DNA of 60,858 nucleotides, filler included, from Guillardia theta CCMP2712 (taxonomy: Eukaryota > Protista > Cryptophyta): assembly GCF_000315625.1 (NCBI RefSeq). It is 3 parts of 3 records of this genome, joined end to end, with 100 filler letters (N's around TTAATTAATTAA, not from the genome) between each part and the next. Parts side by side here need not be neighbours in the genome. Positions count along the whole stretch, not along the records: positions 15,663 to 44,322 come from NW_005434382.1; 2 more parts are not named here. The stretch is one strand, 5' to 3'. The position numbers and the translations under genes are program-made. Shown one piece after another: positions 17,880-44,322 of the stretch (its first letter is position 1; every line of letters begins with the position of its first letter). The notes beneath the pieces are model-generated. The model was not told the DNA's origin, did not search any database, and worked only from the letters and a program-made list of their open reading frames with translations.

Positions 17880-18460
17880 AACATGATTGAGCGAGTAGAG
17901 CGAGCTTGTCTTGTCTCTCAACATGATTGAGCGAGTAGAGCGAGCTTGTCTTGTCTCTCAACATGATTGAGCGAGTAGAGCGAGCTTGTCTTGTCTCTCA
18001 ACATGATTGAGCGAGTAGAGCGAGCTTGTCTTGTATCTCAACATGATTGAGCGAGTAGAGCGAGCTTGTCTTGTCTCTCAACATGATTGAGCGAGTAGAG
18101 CGAGCTTGTCTTGTCTCTCAACATGATTGAGCGAGTAGAGCGAGCTTGTCTTGTCTCTCAACATGATTGAGCGAGTAGAGCGAGCTTGTCTTGTCTCTCA
18201 ACATGATTGAGCGAGTAGAGCGAGCTTGTCTTGTCTCTCAACATGATTGAGCGAGTAGAGCGAGCTTGTCTTGTCTCTCAACATGATTGAGCGAGTAGAG
18301 CGAGCTTGCCTTGTCTCTCAACATGATTGAGCGAGTAGAGCGAGCTTGCCTTGTCTCTCAACATGATTGAGCGAGTAGAGCGAGCTTGTCTTGTCTCTCA
18401 ACATGATTGAGCGAGTAGAGCGAGCTTGTCTTGTCTCTCAACATGATTGAGCGAGTAGAG
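17880..18460. repeat. 40-bp tandem minisatellite, ~14.5 copies
   Basis: ACATGATTGAGCGAGTAGAGCGAGCTTGTCTTGTCTCTCA repeated head-to-tail with rare substitutions and no spacers. Confidence 0.95.
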
Positions 18461-18688
18461 CATGCTTCTCACGGATGGACCAGGCAAGCATCCTTGGGGA
18501 CGATGAGACTGAGAGATAAACCACGTTACTTGTTGTATTTGAAAAACGTACTTGAGCATCAACACAAAAGTCAATGAAAAAAATGTTGTTTTCATGCTGC
18601 AGAGGAACATTATGGCAAAATGAGCAGCAAAGGGAGGAAAATTGAGTCGGGGATTGTGATGTCGATGTTAACAGAGCCATTACTATTG

Positions 18689-22204: not shown

Positions 22205-22277
22205 TTTGGTCTTCTGATAGAGTAGAGGAGACAAGCGGGGTGGGGAAACGAGAAGAGCAGAGGAGAGGATCGGATGG

Positions 22278-22459
22278 GAGAGAGGAGAGAGGAGAGGAGG
22301 AGAGAGGAGAGAGGAGAGAGGAGAGAGGAGAGAGGAGAGAGGAGAGAGGAGAGAGGAGAGAGGAGAGAGGAGAGAGGAGAGAGGAGAGAGGAGAGAGGAG
22401 AGAGGAGAGAGGAGAGAGGAGAGAGGAGAGAGGAGAGAGGAGAGAGGAGAGAGGAGAGG
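22278..22459. repeat. (GAGAGGA)n microsatellite
   Basis: Perfect heptamer run upstream of channel copy B. Confidence 0.95.
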
Positions 22460-32057: not shown

Positions 32058-34013
32058 ATGCGCAGCAAGGAGGACGACACGTTGAGTAGTGACGAAGCGA
32101 GAGAAGAGGAGCAGGAGGTTCAGCCCCCGGCGATGTCGAGCAGAGTCTCGCCCTTCTCGTGCAATCACCTACACTATCATAAACCGGTACCCATTCAAGT
32201 CCCGACCAACTGCACTTTCAAGGTACTCACCTTGACGGGGATGGATAAGATGCATAGAGGGAGCAACCAGACGCGTCACTACCTCGTAAGAAAAAGCAAG
32301 AAAGGAGGATACACCCCCTCTCTCAACATCAAAGATGAGAAGCTTCTCGCGATCCAGCGAGATGCATGCTACGACATCTTCACTCATGTCAAGCATACGG
32401 CATCAAAGCCACCACGAGCTAGAGGACGATGCTTCCTCTGCTTCTTGCAAGGAGACATGCCTGCTCATGGCAGGAGGCGCATCTTCATCAAGCAGGTGAT
32501 ATGCAATGGATCAGGTATGGCGGGAGAAGGAAACTTGGAGCAGACCTTCTTTTTCGGAGTCTGCGAGCGATGCAACGACGAGAGGAACGACCGGGTGCTC
32601 AAGACTGTGATATCGAACGAGCTGCATGCTCAGACTGCCAGCTACCTCATCTATGATGACACGCTCTTGTCGGTGCCGCGCGAGCCTAGGCAGAAAGCTA
32701 GCCTTGCGGGAGTACAAACACCTCGCATCTGCAGCTCCAGCGACTCGGACTCGGACAACGTCCCGATCGCGAGGCTGGAAGAAAGAAGGCACGAAAAGAC
32801 GAGGAAAAACGACAGGAGGCTAGAAGACAGGAGGAATCCAGGACGAGGCAAGATGTCCCCTCAGACGCCTCGCCAAGATCCATCAAGCACTAGCGGCTCC
32901 GACTCGGACAACCTTCCGATCTCTCGGCTACAGGAGAGGAGGAGTGCGAAGCGAAACCTGTCAGCTGCCCTGAGAGCTGATCTTGCGGATGACACTGAGG
33001 ACACAATGAATGCGGCATCTTCCGGTGACGACAATGCCGAGCCAGAGGCCATTCCTCGAGGTTTGCATGGTGGCAGGTACAGACGCAGGTCTCCTTTGAG
33101 CGATGACGATGACGAGGAGGAGGTTGGTGAGCAGCAGATACAGCAGGAGCAGGAGACATCAGAGCATGATGAAGACGACAATGACAACCAAGAGCAGGTG
33201 GACAGCACGGCGCCCGTAGCTTTGATTTGCAAGCCCGTCTGGCAGCAGCCTCAGAAGGACGACCCGTTCGCTCTCTCTGACGACGATGAGTCCAGCAGCA
33301 GCTCCGGGATCAAGGGCCCTTCGAGTTCGGCATGGCCTCCGTGTGCGTGGGCACCAGCACGTACGGGGATGCTAACTCCAGGAGTCTCGGGCGGCTCTAA
33401 GGGGCTGCCTATAACGAGCGCGATGAAAGAGGCTAGGCCGTTCCACATGCCTCGAAGCACAGATAGGGAAACCGAAAAAATGGAGATCAATGCAAGGGTC
33501 CCGGAAGTAGGAGGAAGCGGAAGGCTGCTAAAGGAGAGGAGAGGAAACCAGAGCATGGAACATGAGGAGGTGCGGCGGAAGAGAGCGAAGACGTCGTCAG
33601 GAGCAGACATGCCGGTCAGGGAGCTGCAGGCTTGTGCTCCGGACGTCGACGCGAGCAGCTCTGTTAGTCGGCGGCAAGTCCCTGGGACCGATGACGGAGG
33701 GGATGCACTTGGTGATCAGGGTGCTGCTGGAACAAGCATCACCAGAGGGAGCACAAGCATCACCAGAGGGAGCACAAGCATCACCAGAGGGAGCACAAGC
33801 ATCACCAGAGGGAGCACAAGCATCGGCCAGGGGCAGCCAAGATCGGATGAGAGGATGCTGGCAGGGATTGGGGAAGTCTTAAGGAGCCTGGAGTGGGGAG
33901 AGACAGGAGGACCAGGGCTGTCGATGCTGGAGCAGGTCAGGATGCTCAGCAGGTTTACCAAGACCTACGAGGTGCTATGGAAGGACTTCACTCATGACAA
34001 GCCCTGCGAATGA
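32058..34013 (+). CDS. Intronless 651-aa hypothetical protein: Cys-rich N-terminal domain followed by an acidic/disordered region with internal repeats
   Basis: Uninterrupted ORF; CFLC...C...CERC cluster; SDSDN(V/L)PI(A/S)RL twice; TSITRGS tandem repeat. Confidence 0.65.
   Translation: MRSKEDDTLSSDEAREEEQEVQPPAMSSRVSPFSCNHLHYHKPVPIQVPTNCTFKVLTLTGMDKMHRGSNQTRHYLVRKSKKGGYTPSLNIKDEKLLAIQRDACYDIFTHVKHTASKPPRARGRCFLCFLQGDMPAHGRRRIFIKQVICNGSGMAGEGNLEQTFFFGVCERCNDERNDRVLKTVISNELHAQTASYLIYDDTLLSVPREPRQKASLAGVQTPRICSSSDSDSDNVPIARLEERRHEKTRKNDRRLEDRRNPGRGKMSPQTPRQDPSSTSGSDSDNLPISRLQERRSAKRNLSAALRADLADDTEDTMNAASSGDDNAEPEAIPRGLHGGRYRRRSPLSDDDDEEEVGEQQIQQEQETSEHDEDDNDNQEQVDSTAPVALICKPVWQQPQKDDPFALSDDDESSSSSGIKGPSSSAWPPCAWAPARTGMLTPGVSGGSKGLPITSAMKEARPFHMPRSTDRETEKMEINARVPEVGGSGRLLKERRGNQSMEHEEVRRKRAKTSSGADMPVRELQACAPDVDASSSVSRRQVPGTDDGGDALGDQGAAGTSITRGSTSITRGSTSITRGSTSITRGSTSIGQGQPRSDERMLAGIGEVLRSLEWGETGGPGLSMLEQVRMLSRFTKTYEVLWKDFTHDKPCE
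33730..33823 (+). repeat. 21-bp coding tandem repeat (~4.5 copies)
   Basis: ACAAGCATCACCAGAGGGAGC units encoding TSITRGS. Confidence 0.9.
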
Positions 34014-37975: not shown

Positions 37976-39006
37976 TCAGTTCAGAGGTGCAGAGAATTCC
38001 TTTGTGAGCTCTTCACTTTTCTTCCAGAGCTGCTCAGCCTTCTCTGCATCCTCAGCTAAAGGATGAGATGTCTTCATGACTGCGCACCTAGCATAATATT
38101 CTCCTGGAACCAAGCTAGAAGGAGGGGCAACACAACAGAATGTAGAAGTTGCAGCTAATTGCTCATGGGAGAAGAGAATCATCCCTCCTATCGCTCGATA
38201 AAGACCGATCAACACACCTGACAAACCTTCCTTTGCCAGGCCAGTTGGACCAACGCCGGGGTGAAGAGAGACAGCAATGATGTCAAGCTTCTGATCATGA
38301 AATCGTCTGGCAAGCTCTTTTGCCATCAAAATATTGCTCAGCTTCGATGCGCCATATGCTTCCATCCAACTGTATTTTTCTGGATGGGTCCAATTAGAGA
38401 ATTCTTGGTCTGGATTAGGAGCACTGCGATGTAGCTCGGAACTGACGCAGATAACGCGGGCAGGTTGCGAAGCACGAAGCTTGTCCATGAGCAGTTGACA
38501 GAGAAGAAAGTGCCCTAGGTGGTTGATTGCCCACGTGCTTTCGTGTCCCTGAGGCGACAAGCGAAATGGTTGTGCCATGACCCCGGCATTGAGAACCAGA
38601 AGGTGAAGAGGACAACCAAGCTTTTGAAATTCTTTGGCATAGTTGCGAACGTTTTGCAAGTCCTCCAGATCCAGAGGTACATCGGGTATCATCTCCACGG
38701 ACCCTGCGTTCTCAGCATTCCCTAACTTGTCCTGTATGCTCCGAATTGCTTCCTTGATTGCATCCAACCTTCGCCCAGCAAGGATAACTCTCGCTCCAGC
38801 TACCGCCAAAGCATGAGCAGTCTCGAATCCTGCACCGTTGTTGGCACCAGTCACCTGATTTCTATGAGTCCAAGACAGTAGCGAGGAGTTGATATATGAT
38901 ATATGCCTCAAGGACTTACCACTGCAACTTTTCCCTTGATTGGTCTTCCATCCTTGCTGTATTCCTTGACAACTTCCAATGCTCGCTTGCCGCCAAAAAG
39001 TCCCAT
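37976..39006 (-). CDS. Short-chain dehydrogenase/reductase (retinol dehydrogenase/WWOX-like)
   Basis: Exon 1 MGLFGGKRALEVVKEYSKDGRPIKGKVAV splices to VTGANNGAG; LVLNAG, NHLGHFLL, catalytic YGASK, SLHPG. Confidence 0.92.
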
Positions 39007-39404: not shown

Positions 39405-40090
39405 GGGTTTAGGGTTTAGGGTTTAGGAGCCGGCCCTTAGTAAGAGCAGCCGGCCCTTAGTAAGAGCAGCCGGCCCTTAGTAAGAGCAGCCGGCCCTTAG
39501 TAAGAGCAGCCGGCCCTTAGTAAGAGCAGCCGGCCCTTAGTAAGAGCAGCCGGCCCTTAGTAAGAGCAGCCGGCCCTTAGTAAGAGCAGCCGGCCCTTAG
39601 TAAGAGCAGCCGGCCCTTAGTAAGAGCAGCCGGCCCTTAGTAAGAGCAGCCGGCCCTTAGTAAGAGCAGCCGGCCCTTAGTAAGAGCAGCCGGCCCTTAG
39701 TAAGAGCAGCCGGCCCTTAGTAAGAGCAGCCGGCCCTTAGTAAGAGCAGCCGGTCCTGGCAGGTTCCTTATTTCCTGGCAGGTTCCTTATTTCCTGGCAG
39801 GTTCCTTATTTCCTGGCAGGTCAAATCACATTAGGGTTTAGGGTTTAGGGTTTAGGGTTTAGGAGGTTCCTTATTTCCTGGCAGGTTCCTTATTTCCTGG
39901 CAGGTTCCTTATTTCCTGGCAGGTTCCTTATTTCCTGGCAGGTTCCTTATTTCCTGGCAGGTTCCTTATTTCCTGGCAGGTTCCTTATTTCCTGGCAGGT
40001 TCCTTATTTCCTGGCATAATAGGGTTTAGGGTTTAGGGTTTAGGGTTTAGGGTTTAGGGTTTAGGGTTTAGAGGTTCCTTATTTCCTGGC
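39405..40090 (+). repeat. Composite array: three TTTAGGG tracts interleaved with a 20-bp repeat (x16) and a 19-bp repeat (x3.5, x8, x1)
   Basis: TTTAGGG at 39405-39427, 39831-39863 and 40020-40071; AGCCGGCCCTTAGTAAGAGC at 39428-39753; AGGTTCCTTATTTCCTGGC at 39754-39821, 39864-40015 and 40072-40090. Confidence 0.95.
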
Positions 40091-40166
40091 ATGCAGATTT
40101 GCGGTACCCCTGCGCTGGTGGAGTAAGAGCCGCCAGGAACGACGGAAGCTTGGGAAACCATTGAGA

Positions 40167-42314
40167 ATGCTCCGAAGCATGTGGCCAATATCTATTGTGA
40201 ACCCTGACGAGATCGTGCAGTACCGTACCTCCAGCTACCTCAAGAGGCAGACGGAAACTGGAACGATGCCGTCACCAGCTGAGCTTGTGCGACGACTGGA
40301 TGACTTCGCAAGGCAGAATCCCAAAAGCAGGACGAGCAAAGCTCTGAAAGCCAAAGAGATATCCTTGGAAGCCTTAGCCGAAGCCATCAGTCACACATGC
40401 AGCTTTGCTGAACCTTCACCACTGGAGAGTCTGAAAGGTCTCGGGCAGTGGGGTGATGATGCCAGGCAGTGGTACCTGTCCGAATTTCTAGCAGACAGGC
40501 AACGGCAGATGGAGGCCAGGTCTTATGATGACCAGGGCACGAGTGTGCAGACGATTACCATGAAGGTACTAGGGATACCTGCATACTTCTCCAGACAGGT
40601 TGAAAACTTATGCGTCAAGCTGGAAGAGCAAGGCTTGATCGTAGATCAGACGCAAGACAGCAGGAGTTTGATCTTCAAGGCTCCCCTCAAGCCTGACCTG
40701 GCGAAGGCAGAAGAGATCCCAGCAGTGATCACCTTTGTCCGCAACGAGGCGGCAGAGAAATTCTGGAAAGGAGAAGGTACCTTTAAGGTGGCTGGAAGGA
40801 GGATCCTAGCAGTGAACCCAGCAGCCAACCCACCGATCTCGTTCAAGATGCGACCAAAGAAGGAGAACATGGGCAGAGTCGGAATCCTAGCGGAGGTGGC
40901 CCAACTCCTTAAGCTCAATGATTCGAGTACAGGTGATATATGTGAGATCTACAGGCAGTTGTGCTTGAAACAGGGCCTAGCAATTATCGACCTGATCCCA
41001 AACGCGGGAATGACAGTGAACCTCCCCCCCAAGAGGAACCTGCCGCCAAAGAAGGTGTTTGCAGCGGTAGGAATAGACACAGTCAACCAGAACAGAGAGG
41101 TAGACTGGATCGCGACTTGTTCGAGCCTGGAAGTAGCGGACATCGTCCTCCAGGCATTCGATCGACATGGAAAAGATCGAGCAGGAGTCACTTTGGGATT
41201 GGTCTCAGAGAATGACAAAATACTGAAATGGTTTTCAGTTCAAATGGAAGCAACGACTATGCTCAAGCATACGAAGAATGCTGTGCGACAGGAGGCGGCA
41301 ACGGCAACGGGGGCAGAGATGCTGTACTCAGTGCAAATCTCCTCCCCAGTGCCATCAGGGAAGTTCTCTCGAAGTGAGATTGAAAAAATCTGCGCCAGTG
41401 ACGAAACGGGCAGAGCCAAAGTCATCCGAAACATCCGGAGGTCTGTCGCATGCTGGGACCCACAGGTTGAAAAAGAGCTGCAACGGGTACACATCCAATG
41501 TGACGCAGAGACGGGGATGTGGGATGGGTCTGGAATTATTCTCAGGCTACGAAGTGAAAGGAGTGCAAGAAAGATGATGGCTGAATTCCCCACACACCTT
41601 CTCTGCTGGCAAGGCACAGTTGAGATCCAGACGACAGCAAGTAGTCTGAACCTCAAAGTGTCGCCTCAGGCAACACAGGATCAATCTGACCAAGCCAGAT
41701 CACAAACGCCGGGAACCAGAGCAGGCGGAACCGTGTGGAAAGAGATTGAACTGAACTCAATCATCAACGAAACAAACCTGCCCGACGCGGAAGCAGAGGT
41801 AGTAATTGCTGAGATCAAGACAGCTATCGCGGAAGTAGTTAACAATGACCTACAACAGCAAGGAAAGACCTTACTTCGTCTTGACGATGCTGTGCACGAC
41901 ATGCAGGTCGCCTTAGACAGTCCAGGCAACGCGTCCTTCTCCACGCTGCAAGAATGGGCTGATAAAGGCACTGGAGCGACATGGGATACCCAGAGTAAGG
42001 GCTTCAAAGAGCGAGTCCAACGAATCGTTGAGAAGCATACATGGAAGGTCGCGAAGCGCAAGCAAAGCGCTTTTGCCCCCAAAGAAGAGAAGCAGTTTAA
42101 GACTGACCTGCTCTTCATTGCATTGAATAAATTCCTAGAGGAGACAGTAATCTCTTCGGTAGGAATGCTGGGAGATAACGACGAACTAAAGTTCATGTTG
42201 AGCACTGAACTACAGATGAAAGAGGCCGGAATGGAAGAGGAACCGGAGGAAGGGAGCAAGGCGGACGACGCAGAGGGGATGTCACTAGACTCCCCCCCTG
42301 CGGCACAAGCTTAA
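40167..42314 (+). CDS. Retrotransposon ORF1 (RRM-like, no CCHC knuckle seen); start codon uncertain
   Basis: ~715-aa intronless ORF with RRM-like MKVLGIP...AVITF...FKVAGRRI and an acidic C-terminus; located upstream of the APE ORF. Confidence 0.75.
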   Translation: MLRSMWPISIVNPDEIVQYRTSSYLKRQTETGTMPSPAELVRRLDDFARQNPKSRTSKALKAKEISLEALAEAISHTCSFAEPSPLESLKGLGQWGDDARQWYLSEFLADRQRQMEARSYDDQGTSVQTITMKVLGIPAYFSRQVENLCVKLEEQGLIVDQTQDSRSLIFKAPLKPDLAKAEEIPAVITFVRNEAAEKFWKGEGTFKVAGRRILAVNPAANPPISFKMRPKKENMGRVGILAEVAQLLKLNDSSTGDICEIYRQLCLKQGLAIIDLIPNAGMTVNLPPKRNLPPKKVFAAVGIDTVNQNREVDWIATCSSLEVADIVLQAFDRHGKDRAGVTLGLVSENDKILKWFSVQMEATTMLKHTKNAVRQEAATATGAEMLYSVQISSPVPSGKFSRSEIEKICASDETGRAKVIRNIRRSVACWDPQVEKELQRVHIQCDAETGMWDGSGIILRLRSERSARKMMAEFPTHLLCWQGTVEIQTTASSLNLKVSPQATQDQSDQARSQTPGTRAGGTVWKEIELNSIINETNLPDAEAEVVIAEIKTAIAEVVNNDLQQQGKTLLRLDDAVHDMQVALDSPGNASFSTLQEWADKGTGATWDTQSKGFKERVQRIVEKHTWKVAKRKQSAFAPKEEKQFKTDLLFIALNKFLEETVISSVGMLGDNDELKFMLSTELQMKEAGMEEEPEEGSKADDAEGMSLDSPPAAQA

Positions 42315-44322
42315 TGGACGCAGGAACAGGAGGAGACGAGGGCAGGTGGGACAATTGGCACAAGGGTGAGGGGGAAGGACAAGAAGGTGAGAAAAACAAA
42401 GACAAAGAAAATCAAAAAACGACACAAACATTCGACCTCGTAGGGGAGATCCCCTGGAGTCGAAGGGAACAAAACAGAGAATATGGATTAGCGGCGCTAC
42501 TCAACTCGGGAGAAGCTGGCTTTCTCTCCGAAGATGTTGTGGAGGCGATAATCCTCGAGGCAAGCGAAGGTATCGAACCATTGGAAGACAGATTTCAAGT
42601 AGCATGGCTACGAGACAAGAGGTACGCGAACGCGCAAACTAGAAACCAGGTCGAGTCGCCGAGAGGGACTATTGTCCTCCCGAGAATAGTAGCTTGTTTG
42701 AGAGATCAAGAGGGGAGGACAAAGAGAGCAAAGCGACTACTAGCCGGGGCAGCTCAGCCATTCTTATTCCCGTGCGTAGAGAATGGCAATCATTGGATTC
42801 TACTAATGGCAGATTTTGACACAAAAAGAATACGCATTGTTGATTCACTCAGCACGGCTGAGAGAGACTTGGGGATTGTCAGAAGTCAAAGGGAGGCACA
42901 GTTTCAGCTGGAAGGCGCACAACGAATGGACTTAGCCACACTCGCGGCGACGATTGTCACGGAGGCATTCAGCGACCAGCTATTGTGCGAGGATTTCTTC
43001 TGCTTGTTCCCTTTGCTTTGGGAATGGCCAGAGTCGCACGGGCAGGTGCAGGGAGATACTGTTGCATTTGCTGCTGATCGCAAAGACAAACAGACCGACA
43101 CAACGAGACATCTCAAAAACAGGTAGGCAGCAAGGCGTCCCCCCACCCCAGCAATGGCTCGAGAGGATGAGGCACCGGCTGCTGGATGCGCTTTGGGTGG
43201 AGGATCCAGGAAAAGCGCGCATGCGAGAAACGATCAAAGGCATCTGCAGAGCTTTACAACACGCGCAAGATAAAGGGTACAAGGAATGGCAAGCAGCAGA
43301 GGTGACCCAGGCACAAGAGATGGAGCAGGGAGAGCAAGAACCGTGGCAAGCGAGAAACATGGTGGACCTGCGGACATATGAAAGGTCAGAACAGATGGAC
43401 TCACTACCGCCGCAGGCCACATCGCTCCCCCCAGCGGGCAAGCACAAAGAACAAGCTTCGAACGATGTAAGGGGAACTAGGGAGGAGGAGGAGACGCACT
43501 CTCCGGCAAGAGATCGAAGGGGAGTACCACATCAACTTCAATGGGCCAATAGGGAAGAGGAACAAATACTAACAACAGGTAGAAAACCTCACAATGCAAT
43601 TCGAACAGAAAGATCAGAGCAACCATCATGGGTGGAGATGCACAGAAAGGATAACACCCCAGGCAACATCATCTCTCAAAATGTTAATGGGTGCAGCCAG
43701 TTTGTGCTGAAACACATCTTGGGATACCTGATTGAGACATACCAGCCGAGCGTGGTAATGCTGCAGGAGGTCTTGGTAGGGGGGAGGAGGAAAGAGATAG
43801 CTCTCCGAACGATGATCAAGAAGGAATGGGGATGCTATCGAGTATTTATCACGAAAGGCACGGGGGGCGGGAGAAAGGGTAAGAGTGACCTACGCCTCAT
43901 GACATTAGCGCATGCTGACCTTGCACCTCGCCCCCCCCTGCCATGGCACTTCGCCATGGAAGAGGAGCGCGAGGTCTCCCAAAAAAGAATACAGGTTTTA
44001 CACGTTGGCCGCAAAAAAGAAACAATATTGTTGGCGAACGTACATTTCCCTATCGCATCGGAGGGGAGGGACCGAGACAACATGTGGAAGGCGCTGAGCC
44101 AGATGCTCAAGATGGACCCAAACATTAAGCTCAGCATCGTCGGAGGCGACTTCAACGCATCTCGAAAGCTTGCAGAGATCTGCACGAGAGTAGGGTACGG
44201 GAGCAACTCGAACGTGCACCGCGCAGATGAGGAAATGGAACGAAACTTAAATGAGCTGGGGCGATATCAGATGGTCACCTGCGAAAAGATGAGCAGAAGC
44301 AGTTCGCATTCACCTCTCCACA
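42314..44322 (+). pseudogene. Retrotransposon ORF2, N-terminal part: Ulp1/C48-like protease + APE endonuclease; frameshift near 43065; truncated by gap
   Basis: PCVENGNHWILLMADF...IRIVDSL...QVQGD is Ulp1-like. SQNVNG, VVMLQEV, LANVHFP and VGGDFNA are APE/EEP motifs. Confidence 0.8.

Follow-up and report, generated by a model that had tools for sequence, protein, structure and literature searches.

We place at roughly 85% the probability that positions 39405 to 44322 of the window, the whole 60,858-nucleotide stretch of Guillardia theta CCMP2712 DNA analyzed here, form the proximal edge of an array, at a chromosome end, of retrotransposons without long terminal repeats (non-LTR) that are specific for telomere repeats. 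This segment is the edge of contig C292 in an assembly of 87.1 Mb and 669 contigs; unique host DNA extends up to 39404, and everything from 39405 on is TTTAGGG repeat or element DNA. Direct reading confirmed the original prediction that TTTAGGG tracts (39405 to 40071) are followed on the same strand by an intronless long interspersed nuclear element (LINE) with two open reading frames (ORFs) in a SART-like orientation. TTTAGGG is the real telomere repeat of this genome, where four tandem units occur 811 times in forward and 964 times in reverse orientation, compared with 0 for a reversed control pattern, with the reverse form at contig starts and the forward form at contig ends. The association of the elements with telomeres is far beyond chance.

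Searches of the genome with its own sequences returned more than 60 matches to ORF1 and more than 60 to the apurinic/apyrimidinic-type endonuclease (APE) of ORF2, and these fall into several families. Family A is ~100% identical to the window copy, family A' shares 85% identity with it in ORF1 and 68% in the APE, family B shares 39% and 41%, respectively, and family C shares 32 to 34% in ORF1. The autonomous elements (families A/A' and B) are ~10.5 kb long and consist of a 5' array of family-specific 19- to 20-bp repeats, ORF1, ORF2, and a 3' untranslated region (UTR) closing with the box TCTAATAAAnTCnA and an (ATA)n or (CTA)n tail.

The junctions of these elements were counted by exact-pattern searches, and the tracts were counted over the loci examined (about 50). 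Exact 3' ends abut telomere repeats in 26 of 38 cases, all in a single register, (NTA)n followed by GGGTTTAGGG, with ..TA before the junction. The family A/A' 3' end reads ..GAGTCTAATAAACTCAA(ATA)n, and GGGTTTAGGG comes directly after it at 17 of the 26 sites of the exact 17-mer; the family B 3' end reads ..TCTAATAAAATCGA(CTA)n and is directly followed by GGGTTTAGGG at 9 of 12 sites, one of the nine having a variant first unit. No poly(A) tail was found at the A/A' or B 3' ends in the pattern searches. Elements lie head to tail with 2 to 26 TTTAGGG units between them, and 31 distinct telomere tracts of this size range were counted. Directly after the tract stands an element 5' end in 29 of the 31, nearly always the family-specific 19- to 20-bp array, with one 5'-truncated copy among them, and directly before it stands an intact element 3' end in 12. 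The 5' arrays start after TTTAGG, TTTAG, or TTTAGGG, often with an AGG overlap. Other copies were expected to share a fixed 3' register in TTTAGGG and to lie close to contig ends, and these 26 ends and the contig positions given below bear this out.

Such arrays could also build up passively, if elements inserted without specificity and survived only in gene-poor chromosome ends while repeated breakage and telomerase healing laid down the tracts. Healing does occur, as several copies truncated on the 3' (distal) side are capped directly by TTTAGGG, namely L015 in ORF2 (~3980, minus strand), L046 in ORF1 (2683), and L001 (1327), L003 (1044, minus strand), and L011 (1278, minus strand) in their 3' UTRs; these look as if their ends had eroded and telomerase had then healed them. 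There are also a few old fragments in internal positions. Healing would cap random internal points, however, yet the 26 exact 3' termini share one register after an intact (NTA)n tail, and full-length 5' ends follow directly after TTTAG(G). In addition, the first TTTAGGG tract of the window lies less than 1 kb from host genes, which leaves no gene-poor buffer. We therefore consider passive accumulation unlikely and favor insertion that is specific for telomere repeats.

The positions of the copies on their contigs give the arrays a direction. Thirty-six of 63 ORF1 matches are within 25 kb of a contig start, all 36 on the minus strand, and all eight plus-strand matches on contigs of known length are within 30 kb of the contig end. 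Consequently, the sense strand continues the G-rich telomere strand, and the 3' end of each element faces the chromosome tip. With the sense strand joined to the G-strand and the 3' end distal, priming must start from a 3' OH of the C-rich strand, which can be obtained only by an internal nick in duplex telomere, and this excludes terminal G-overhang priming of the HeT-A/TART style. Endonuclease-independent end attachment, in which the 3' end of the G-overhang primes reverse transcription as in HeT-A/TART or endonuclease-deficient Penelope-like elements, would account for chromosome-end head-to-tail arrays and for the ORF1-only (gag-only) partner described below, both as in Drosophila. It predicts, however, a sense strand on the C-rich strand and a distal 5' end, the reverse of what is observed, and it sits poorly with telomere repeats on both flanks and with the conservation of two apparently intact endonuclease domains. 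We regard end attachment as very improbable, well behind site-specific insertion.

The same organization is found outside the assembly. An environmental ENA metagenome contig (L056, 14.4 kb), 82 to 90% identical and with identical junction sequences, reads in order unique DNA, (TTTAGGG)8, an ORF1-only element, (TTTAGGG)8, an autonomous element with a 712-amino-acid ORF1 and a 2,573-amino-acid ORF2, (TTTAGGG)8, and the next element. The JGI contig L052 starts in a 20-bp array and closes ..AATAATA GGGTTTAGGGTTTAGG AG.

The layout of the window locus is as follows.

37976-38911, minus strand: host short-chain dehydrogenase (SDR) gene
39405-39427, plus strand: TTTAGGG tract 1, GGG and ~3 units, at the border with unique host DNA
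39428-39833, plus strand: mini-element 1, a 20-bp array (AGCCGGCCCTTAGTAAGAGC, 16.5 copies), three 19-bp units (GGTTCCTTATTTCCTGGCA), and a tail
39834-39863, plus strand: TTTAGGG tract 2, ~4 units, last letters TTTAGG
39864-40021, plus strand: mini-element 2, eight 19-bp 5' units and TAATA, then GGG directly
40022-40071, plus strand: TTTAGGG tract 3, seven units, last letters TTTAG, target DNA 5' of the long copy
40072-40166, plus strand: 5' end of the long copy, a single 19-bp unit and unique 5' UTR
40167-42314, plus strand: ORF1, 715 amino acids, ATG at 40167 (direct reading; fold model)
42314-42976, plus strand: start of ORF2 and N-terminal C48 part with His (NHW) and Asp (IVDSL)
42977-43057, plus strand: inverted patch in the C48 segment, 77 to 81 bp (alignment with the copy in C141)
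43058-44322, plus strand: ORF2 linker, then APE from ~43620 (NVNG, LQE, GDFNA), in the frame of ORF 42954

The two mini-elements (39428-40021) are 5' repeat arrays fused to a few 3'-terminal bases, each followed by a TTTAGGG tract; the tail of the first is short and 3'-end-like, closing ..ATTA directly against GGG. The 20-bp unit AGCCGGCCCTTAGTAAGAGC that opens mini-element 1 is also found upstream of a family A copy in C133 (L043). At its 5' end the long copy has one 19-bp unit, while other copies have from 4 to more than 20. ORF1 stops and ORF2 starts on a shared A at 42314 (TAATG in the DNA, a UAAUG overlap in the RNA), and the end of the contig at 44322 cuts ORF2 before the C terminus of the APE and the domains that follow it in longer copies.

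In full copies, ORF2 is 2,482 to 2,575 amino acids long and carries, in order, a Ulp1-type C48 protease domain, the APE, a reverse transcriptase (RT), a CCHC finger, and an R2-like restriction-like endonuclease (RLE). The ORF2s of family B are uninterrupted (2,482 to 2,504 amino acids). The one of 2,482 amino acids has a weakly matching C48-like region (148-260), Exo_endo_phos at 429-612 (33.2 bits, cut-off 24.5) N-terminal to the RT, RVT_1 at 1147-1400 (121.7 bits), and a weakly matching zf-RVT-like finger (2262-2299), so the RT that had been foreseen after the APE is in place. Peptidase_C48 scores 24.0 bits in the C141 copy, above the cut-off of 20.7, and families A and B, like the environmental relatives P0001 and P0002, conserve its His, Asp, Gln, and Cys. 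In the window copy, Peptidase_C48 (16.7 bits) and Exo_endo_phos (15.5 bits) both score under the curated cut-offs. The catalytic motifs of the APE are complete (N, E, D/N, D, and DH). At the C terminus, C..C..H..C followed by PD..E..R..K..KY is invariant in nine related sequences. An AlphaFold model of the last 350 amino acids (predicted local distance difference test score [pLDDT] 73) finds only R2 proteins in its top seven matches (E 1.7e-6 to 1.9e-3; best TM score 0.52, normalized to the model, over 274 columns), followed by PD-(D/E)xK cap-snatching nucleases. Against the PDB, the RT scores about equally with R2 (2.9e-22) and human L1 ORF2p (1.4e-18) and is thus roughly equidistant from the two, and the APE profile matches archaeal ExoIII (3e-4) and L1-EN (5e-3); the TRAS1 and R1 endonuclease structures are not among its PDB matches at E <= 10. 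No SET domain was matched by Pfam in ORF1 or ORF2. Because an APE and an RLE both reside in ORF2, the telomeric elements are, with high probability, dual-endonuclease LINEs of the Dualen/RandI type.

It might be argued that there is no real mobile family here, the pattern being an artefact of assembly or annotation or a subtelomeric multigene family of the host. Contigs do break inside the elements, and the NCBI annotation knows the ORF1 copies as hypothetical proteins only (relatives include GUITHDRAFT_153341 and GUITHDRAFT_107162). Against this stand more than 60 copies in at least three diverged families with RT, APE, and RLE, and the recurrence of the same structures in independent JGI and ENA contigs and in run contigs from 11 studies. 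We give this explanation next to no weight compared with a family of mobile elements.

Several observations weigh against a telomere-specific Dualen array. Twelve of the 38 exact 3' ends have no telomere repeats within 40 nucleotides, although contig ends cut some of these, others are internal fragments, and others may have longer tails. A few degraded copies lie far from contig ends. The assembly is fragmented exactly at these repeats, which bounds what can be seen of the terminal structure and the length of the arrays. Site-specific cleavage, the nick site, and the nuclease responsible are putative, as they are deduced from the junctions. The Dualen/RandI assignment likewise draws on domain content and PDB scores, the Repbase Dualens having been compared by description only. 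Finally, RNase H, a listed Dualen domain, gave no Pfam match (RNase_H, E <= 1) in the family B ORF2, and BLAST with the RNase H of relatives found no match in ORF2. An hhalign comparison with RNase H was collinear and insignificant (E 0.066), with the catalytic Glu and Asp not conserved, and the domain would appear to have been either lost or degenerate in the telomeric elements.

A few loci depart from the regular pattern. In C72 (431-441 kb), arrays of opposite orientation face each other, and in C176 (1.7-12 kb; L045, with a gap of 100 N), arrays point away from each other; either could reflect two chromosome ends that fused or were misjoined in scaffolding. In C26 (L047, 4040-4118), a short inverted family B 3' end (..TAGTAGTAGTCGATTTTATTAGAATG) sits beside degenerate telomere-like repeats, immediately on the proximal side of the first regular tract. 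In C214 (L005, 960-1066), seven 16-bp variant repeats (GGGTTTAGGGTTTGTC or ..GAC) separate unique DNA from the regular TTTAGGG tract. In C90 (L048, 6285-9716), a Ty3/gypsy-type pol ORF (RT_RNaseH, Integrase_H2C2, and rve) is directly upstream of and overlaps a 5'-truncated family A' ORF2; here an LTR element has landed in the telomeric array.

ORF1 of the window copy (715 amino acids) matches no Pfam family, has only 25 relatives among 1.84 billion representative proteins, and gave nothing useful in a protein-atlas search. A model built from 19 sequences (pLDDT 70) has a helical N-terminal part followed by several modules resembling RNA recognition motifs (RRMs), and it matches the tandem-RRM proteins Prp24, raver1, and HuR (Foldseek E 2.5e-5 to 1e-3). 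The clearest RRM, residues 384-498, superposes on whole RRM domains with Z ~8 and a root-mean-square deviation of 2 to 3 Å over ~80 residues. The RRM-like character first suggested for ORF1 is therefore supported at the level of the modeled fold, where the protein resembles a multi-RRM RNA-binding protein. Transcripts of G. theta in MMETSP cluster with the ORF1 of family B.

Family C is a complete element of ~3 kb with a 5' array, a 715-amino-acid homologue of ORF1, and a ~420-bp 3' UTR with 74-bp repeats; it has no ORF2. Its 3' end reads ..TCTAATAAACTCACA(TAA)n TA followed by GGGTTTAGGG, and the 3' boxes CYTTTAGA and CTAnnnTCTAATAAAnTCnA(NTA)n are common to all families. About two dozen copies were found, most with open frames, and an intact one is also present in L056. 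Since it shares the 3' end box and the arrays and has no ORF2, family C resembles a non-autonomous partner of the HeT-A kind, and it is presumably mobilized in trans by the ORF2 of families A and B.

How might these elements insert? One of the two endonucleases, APE or RLE, would nick the C-rich strand in duplex telomere repeats. The downstream flank always begins with GGG, which would put the break at CCC^TAAA, or as many as two bases beyond it if the tail takes its last TA from the target. The freed 3' OH would then prime reverse transcription at the (NTA)n tail. Because the elements sit before telomere tracts, read-through transcripts would end in GGGUUUAGGG, which may aid priming by pairing with the nicked strand. 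The second strand would then be cut and the 5' end joined by microhomology (AGG), a step that fits the variable 5' ends within the arrays and their AGG overlaps. The healing of capped copies implies that telomerase is active and regenerates targets; by adding repeats distally, it would supply new targets and heal eroded copies. A putative role of the elements in the maintenance of chromosome ends is possible. A bolder proposal, which we advance only tentatively and think more likely wrong than right, is that G. theta chromosome ends are built and maintained jointly by telomerase and a community of autonomous and gag-only Dualen elements, with the two endonucleases splitting the cuts of the C- and G-strands and a deSUMOylase-like C48 domain acting on telomere chromatin. 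If so, a HeT-A/TART- or SART/TRAS-like telomere symbiosis would have arisen independently for a third time, and for the first time both outside animals and within the deep-branching Dualen group.

The chief natural examples of mobile DNA living at peace with its host, or useful to it, are retrotransposons specific for telomeres, and to our knowledge the well-studied ones are all from insects. If our interpretation is true, a cryptophyte alga offers a case in the sole LINE group that keeps both the ancestral (RLE) and the derived (APE) endonuclease, and with it a natural setting in which to ask which of the two nucleases determines target specificity. It would also offer an independent counterpart to the Drosophila partnership of autonomous and gag-only telomere elements, and a compact element that targets precisely while telomerase stays active. 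More immediately, the elements account for the many chromosome ends at which the G. theta assembly breaks off, and dozens of proteins annotated as "hypothetical" are copies of LINE ORF1.

The long copy in the window is itself damaged. All of the motifs that were first read in its ORF2 (NHW, IVDSL, NVNG, LQE, and GDFNA) are present, but ORF2 is not a single open frame, as the frame changes on the way from the C48 part to the APE part. When this copy is aligned with that of C141, 42977-43057 proves to be ORF2 sequence from ~4.4 kb downstream, in reverse complement; this patch replaces the active-site segment of C48 with the Gln and Cys (QQTDxxNCG) and shifts the frame. An intron at 43126, where the DNA reads caggtaggc, was considered as the cause of the frame change and was ruled out by the 81-bp inverted patch. 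The normal segment is found at this site in all other family A copies examined (C141, C214, C26, C181, C17, and C133), and contigs of four public runs, which were compared as contigs, have the normal 77 letters at the joint. The patch is therefore private to the window copy or to this assembly, and it may be a scar of template switching or gene conversion, or else an error of assembly.

Within the linker between C48 and APE, 360 nucleotides (43366-43725) are skipped in contigs of three runs whose kind was guessed to be RNA (X3, X8, and X9) and kept in a run guessed to be DNA (X1); the assembly lacks the joined form. At its ends this interval reads CT..AC, that is, GT..AG on the minus strand, and the flanks are short in two runs. 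With the kinds of run guessed, this suggests a spliced antisense transcript across the linker. Elsewhere in the window are an unrelated 40-bp tandem array (17880-18461, 14.6 copies, 99% matches), an unrelated (GGAGAGA)26 tract (22277-22458), and an unrelated ORF of 651 amino acids (32058-34013) that contains a 21-bp repeat and matches no Pfam family.

Dualen/RandI elements were reportedly described from Chlamydomonas reinhardtii by Kojima and Fujiwara in 2005. Like them, the telomeric elements combine APE and RLE in one ORF, the defining feature of Dualen/RandI (PMC4640811, PMC9977147). The Dualens of C. reinhardtii, which include the active Dualen-4b_cRei, occupy dispersed sites with long target duplications (PMC9977147), whereas those described here lie in TTTAGGG repeats and have a separate ORF1 and an N-terminal C48. 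Closer still are the cryptophyte Dualens of Lescot et al. 2016 (PMC5029228), who reported Dualen-1_GCr (SET, C48, APE, RT, RNase H, CCHC, and RLE), a related 2,543-amino-acid Tara Oceans ORF with APE and RT, and Dualen-5_CCu; a 2025 paper also lists LINE/Dualen among cryptophyte repeats. These share with the telomeric elements the domain order C48-APE-RT-CCHC-RLE, the length class of ORF2, and a cryptophyte host, but they were rebuilt from transcriptomes and metagenomes, and the paper (PMC5029228) gives no insertion sites, separate ORF1, or link to telomeres. Compared by description only, the telomeric elements differ from Dualen-1_GCr in having no SET and no detected RNase H. More distant relatives, at 25 to 32% identity in the RT, have RNase H, an APE, or a UCH and SET ORF upstream, as in Dualen-1_GCr, and SET with UCH is found only in the distant relative L055. 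The suggestion of an undescribed lineage with a new domain combination thus did not survive, since the longer copies add a CCHC finger and an R2-like RLE and a described family already has the same architecture (Lescot et al. 2016, PMC5029228); the domain architecture was already known. For this group the apparent novelties are the specificity for telomere repeats, a multi-RRM ORF1 as a separate frame, the 5' arrays, the (NTA)n tails, and the gag-only partner. Our literature search, with Repbase Reports outside its scope, returned no report linking Dualen or any cryptophyte LINE to telomeres.

The nearest parallels in behavior are SART1 and TRAS1 and, as regards the arrays and the gag-only partner, HeT-A and TART; by descent the G. 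theta elements belong with neither. In SART1, ORF1 and ORF2 overlap at UAAUG, which supports translational coupling, and the same overlap is seen in family A. SART1 and TRAS1 of Bombyx mori (R1 clade) are site-specific LINEs in telomerase-type repeats (PMC7265360), and they too hold a fixed position in the repeat and have two ORFs; SART1 also has its sense strand on the G-rich strand. SART/TRAS elements, however, belong to the R1 clade and have an APE only and a poly(A) tail, whereas the elements here have APE, RLE, and C48 and (ATA)n or (CTA)n tails. Because the RLE, C48, tails, and APE profile differ, the telomere habit would be convergent with that of SART/TRAS. With HeT-A, TART, and TAHRE of Drosophila, the G. 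theta elements share head-to-tail terminal arrays and an autonomous element with a gag-only partner that share 3' sequences, but Drosophila has no telomerase repeats, and its elements are of the Jockey clade and join the chromosome end with their 5' end distal, while here TTTAGGG flanks both sides and the 3' end is distal. Zepp of Chlorella has an APE only and poly(A), and we know of no dual endonuclease or C48 domain reported for Zepp or for MoTeR of Magnaporthe. Both are non-LTR elements in or beside telomere repeats of telomerase-using microbes, as here, but they are of other clades, MoTeR (PMC4640811) being CRE/SLACS-like with an RLE only. NeSL and Utopia-1_TSP (PMC4640811) share the pairing of a Ulp1 protease with an RLE; they have no APE and target spliced-leader or U2 small nuclear RNA genes, whereas in the telomeric elements of G. 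theta the APE looks intact.

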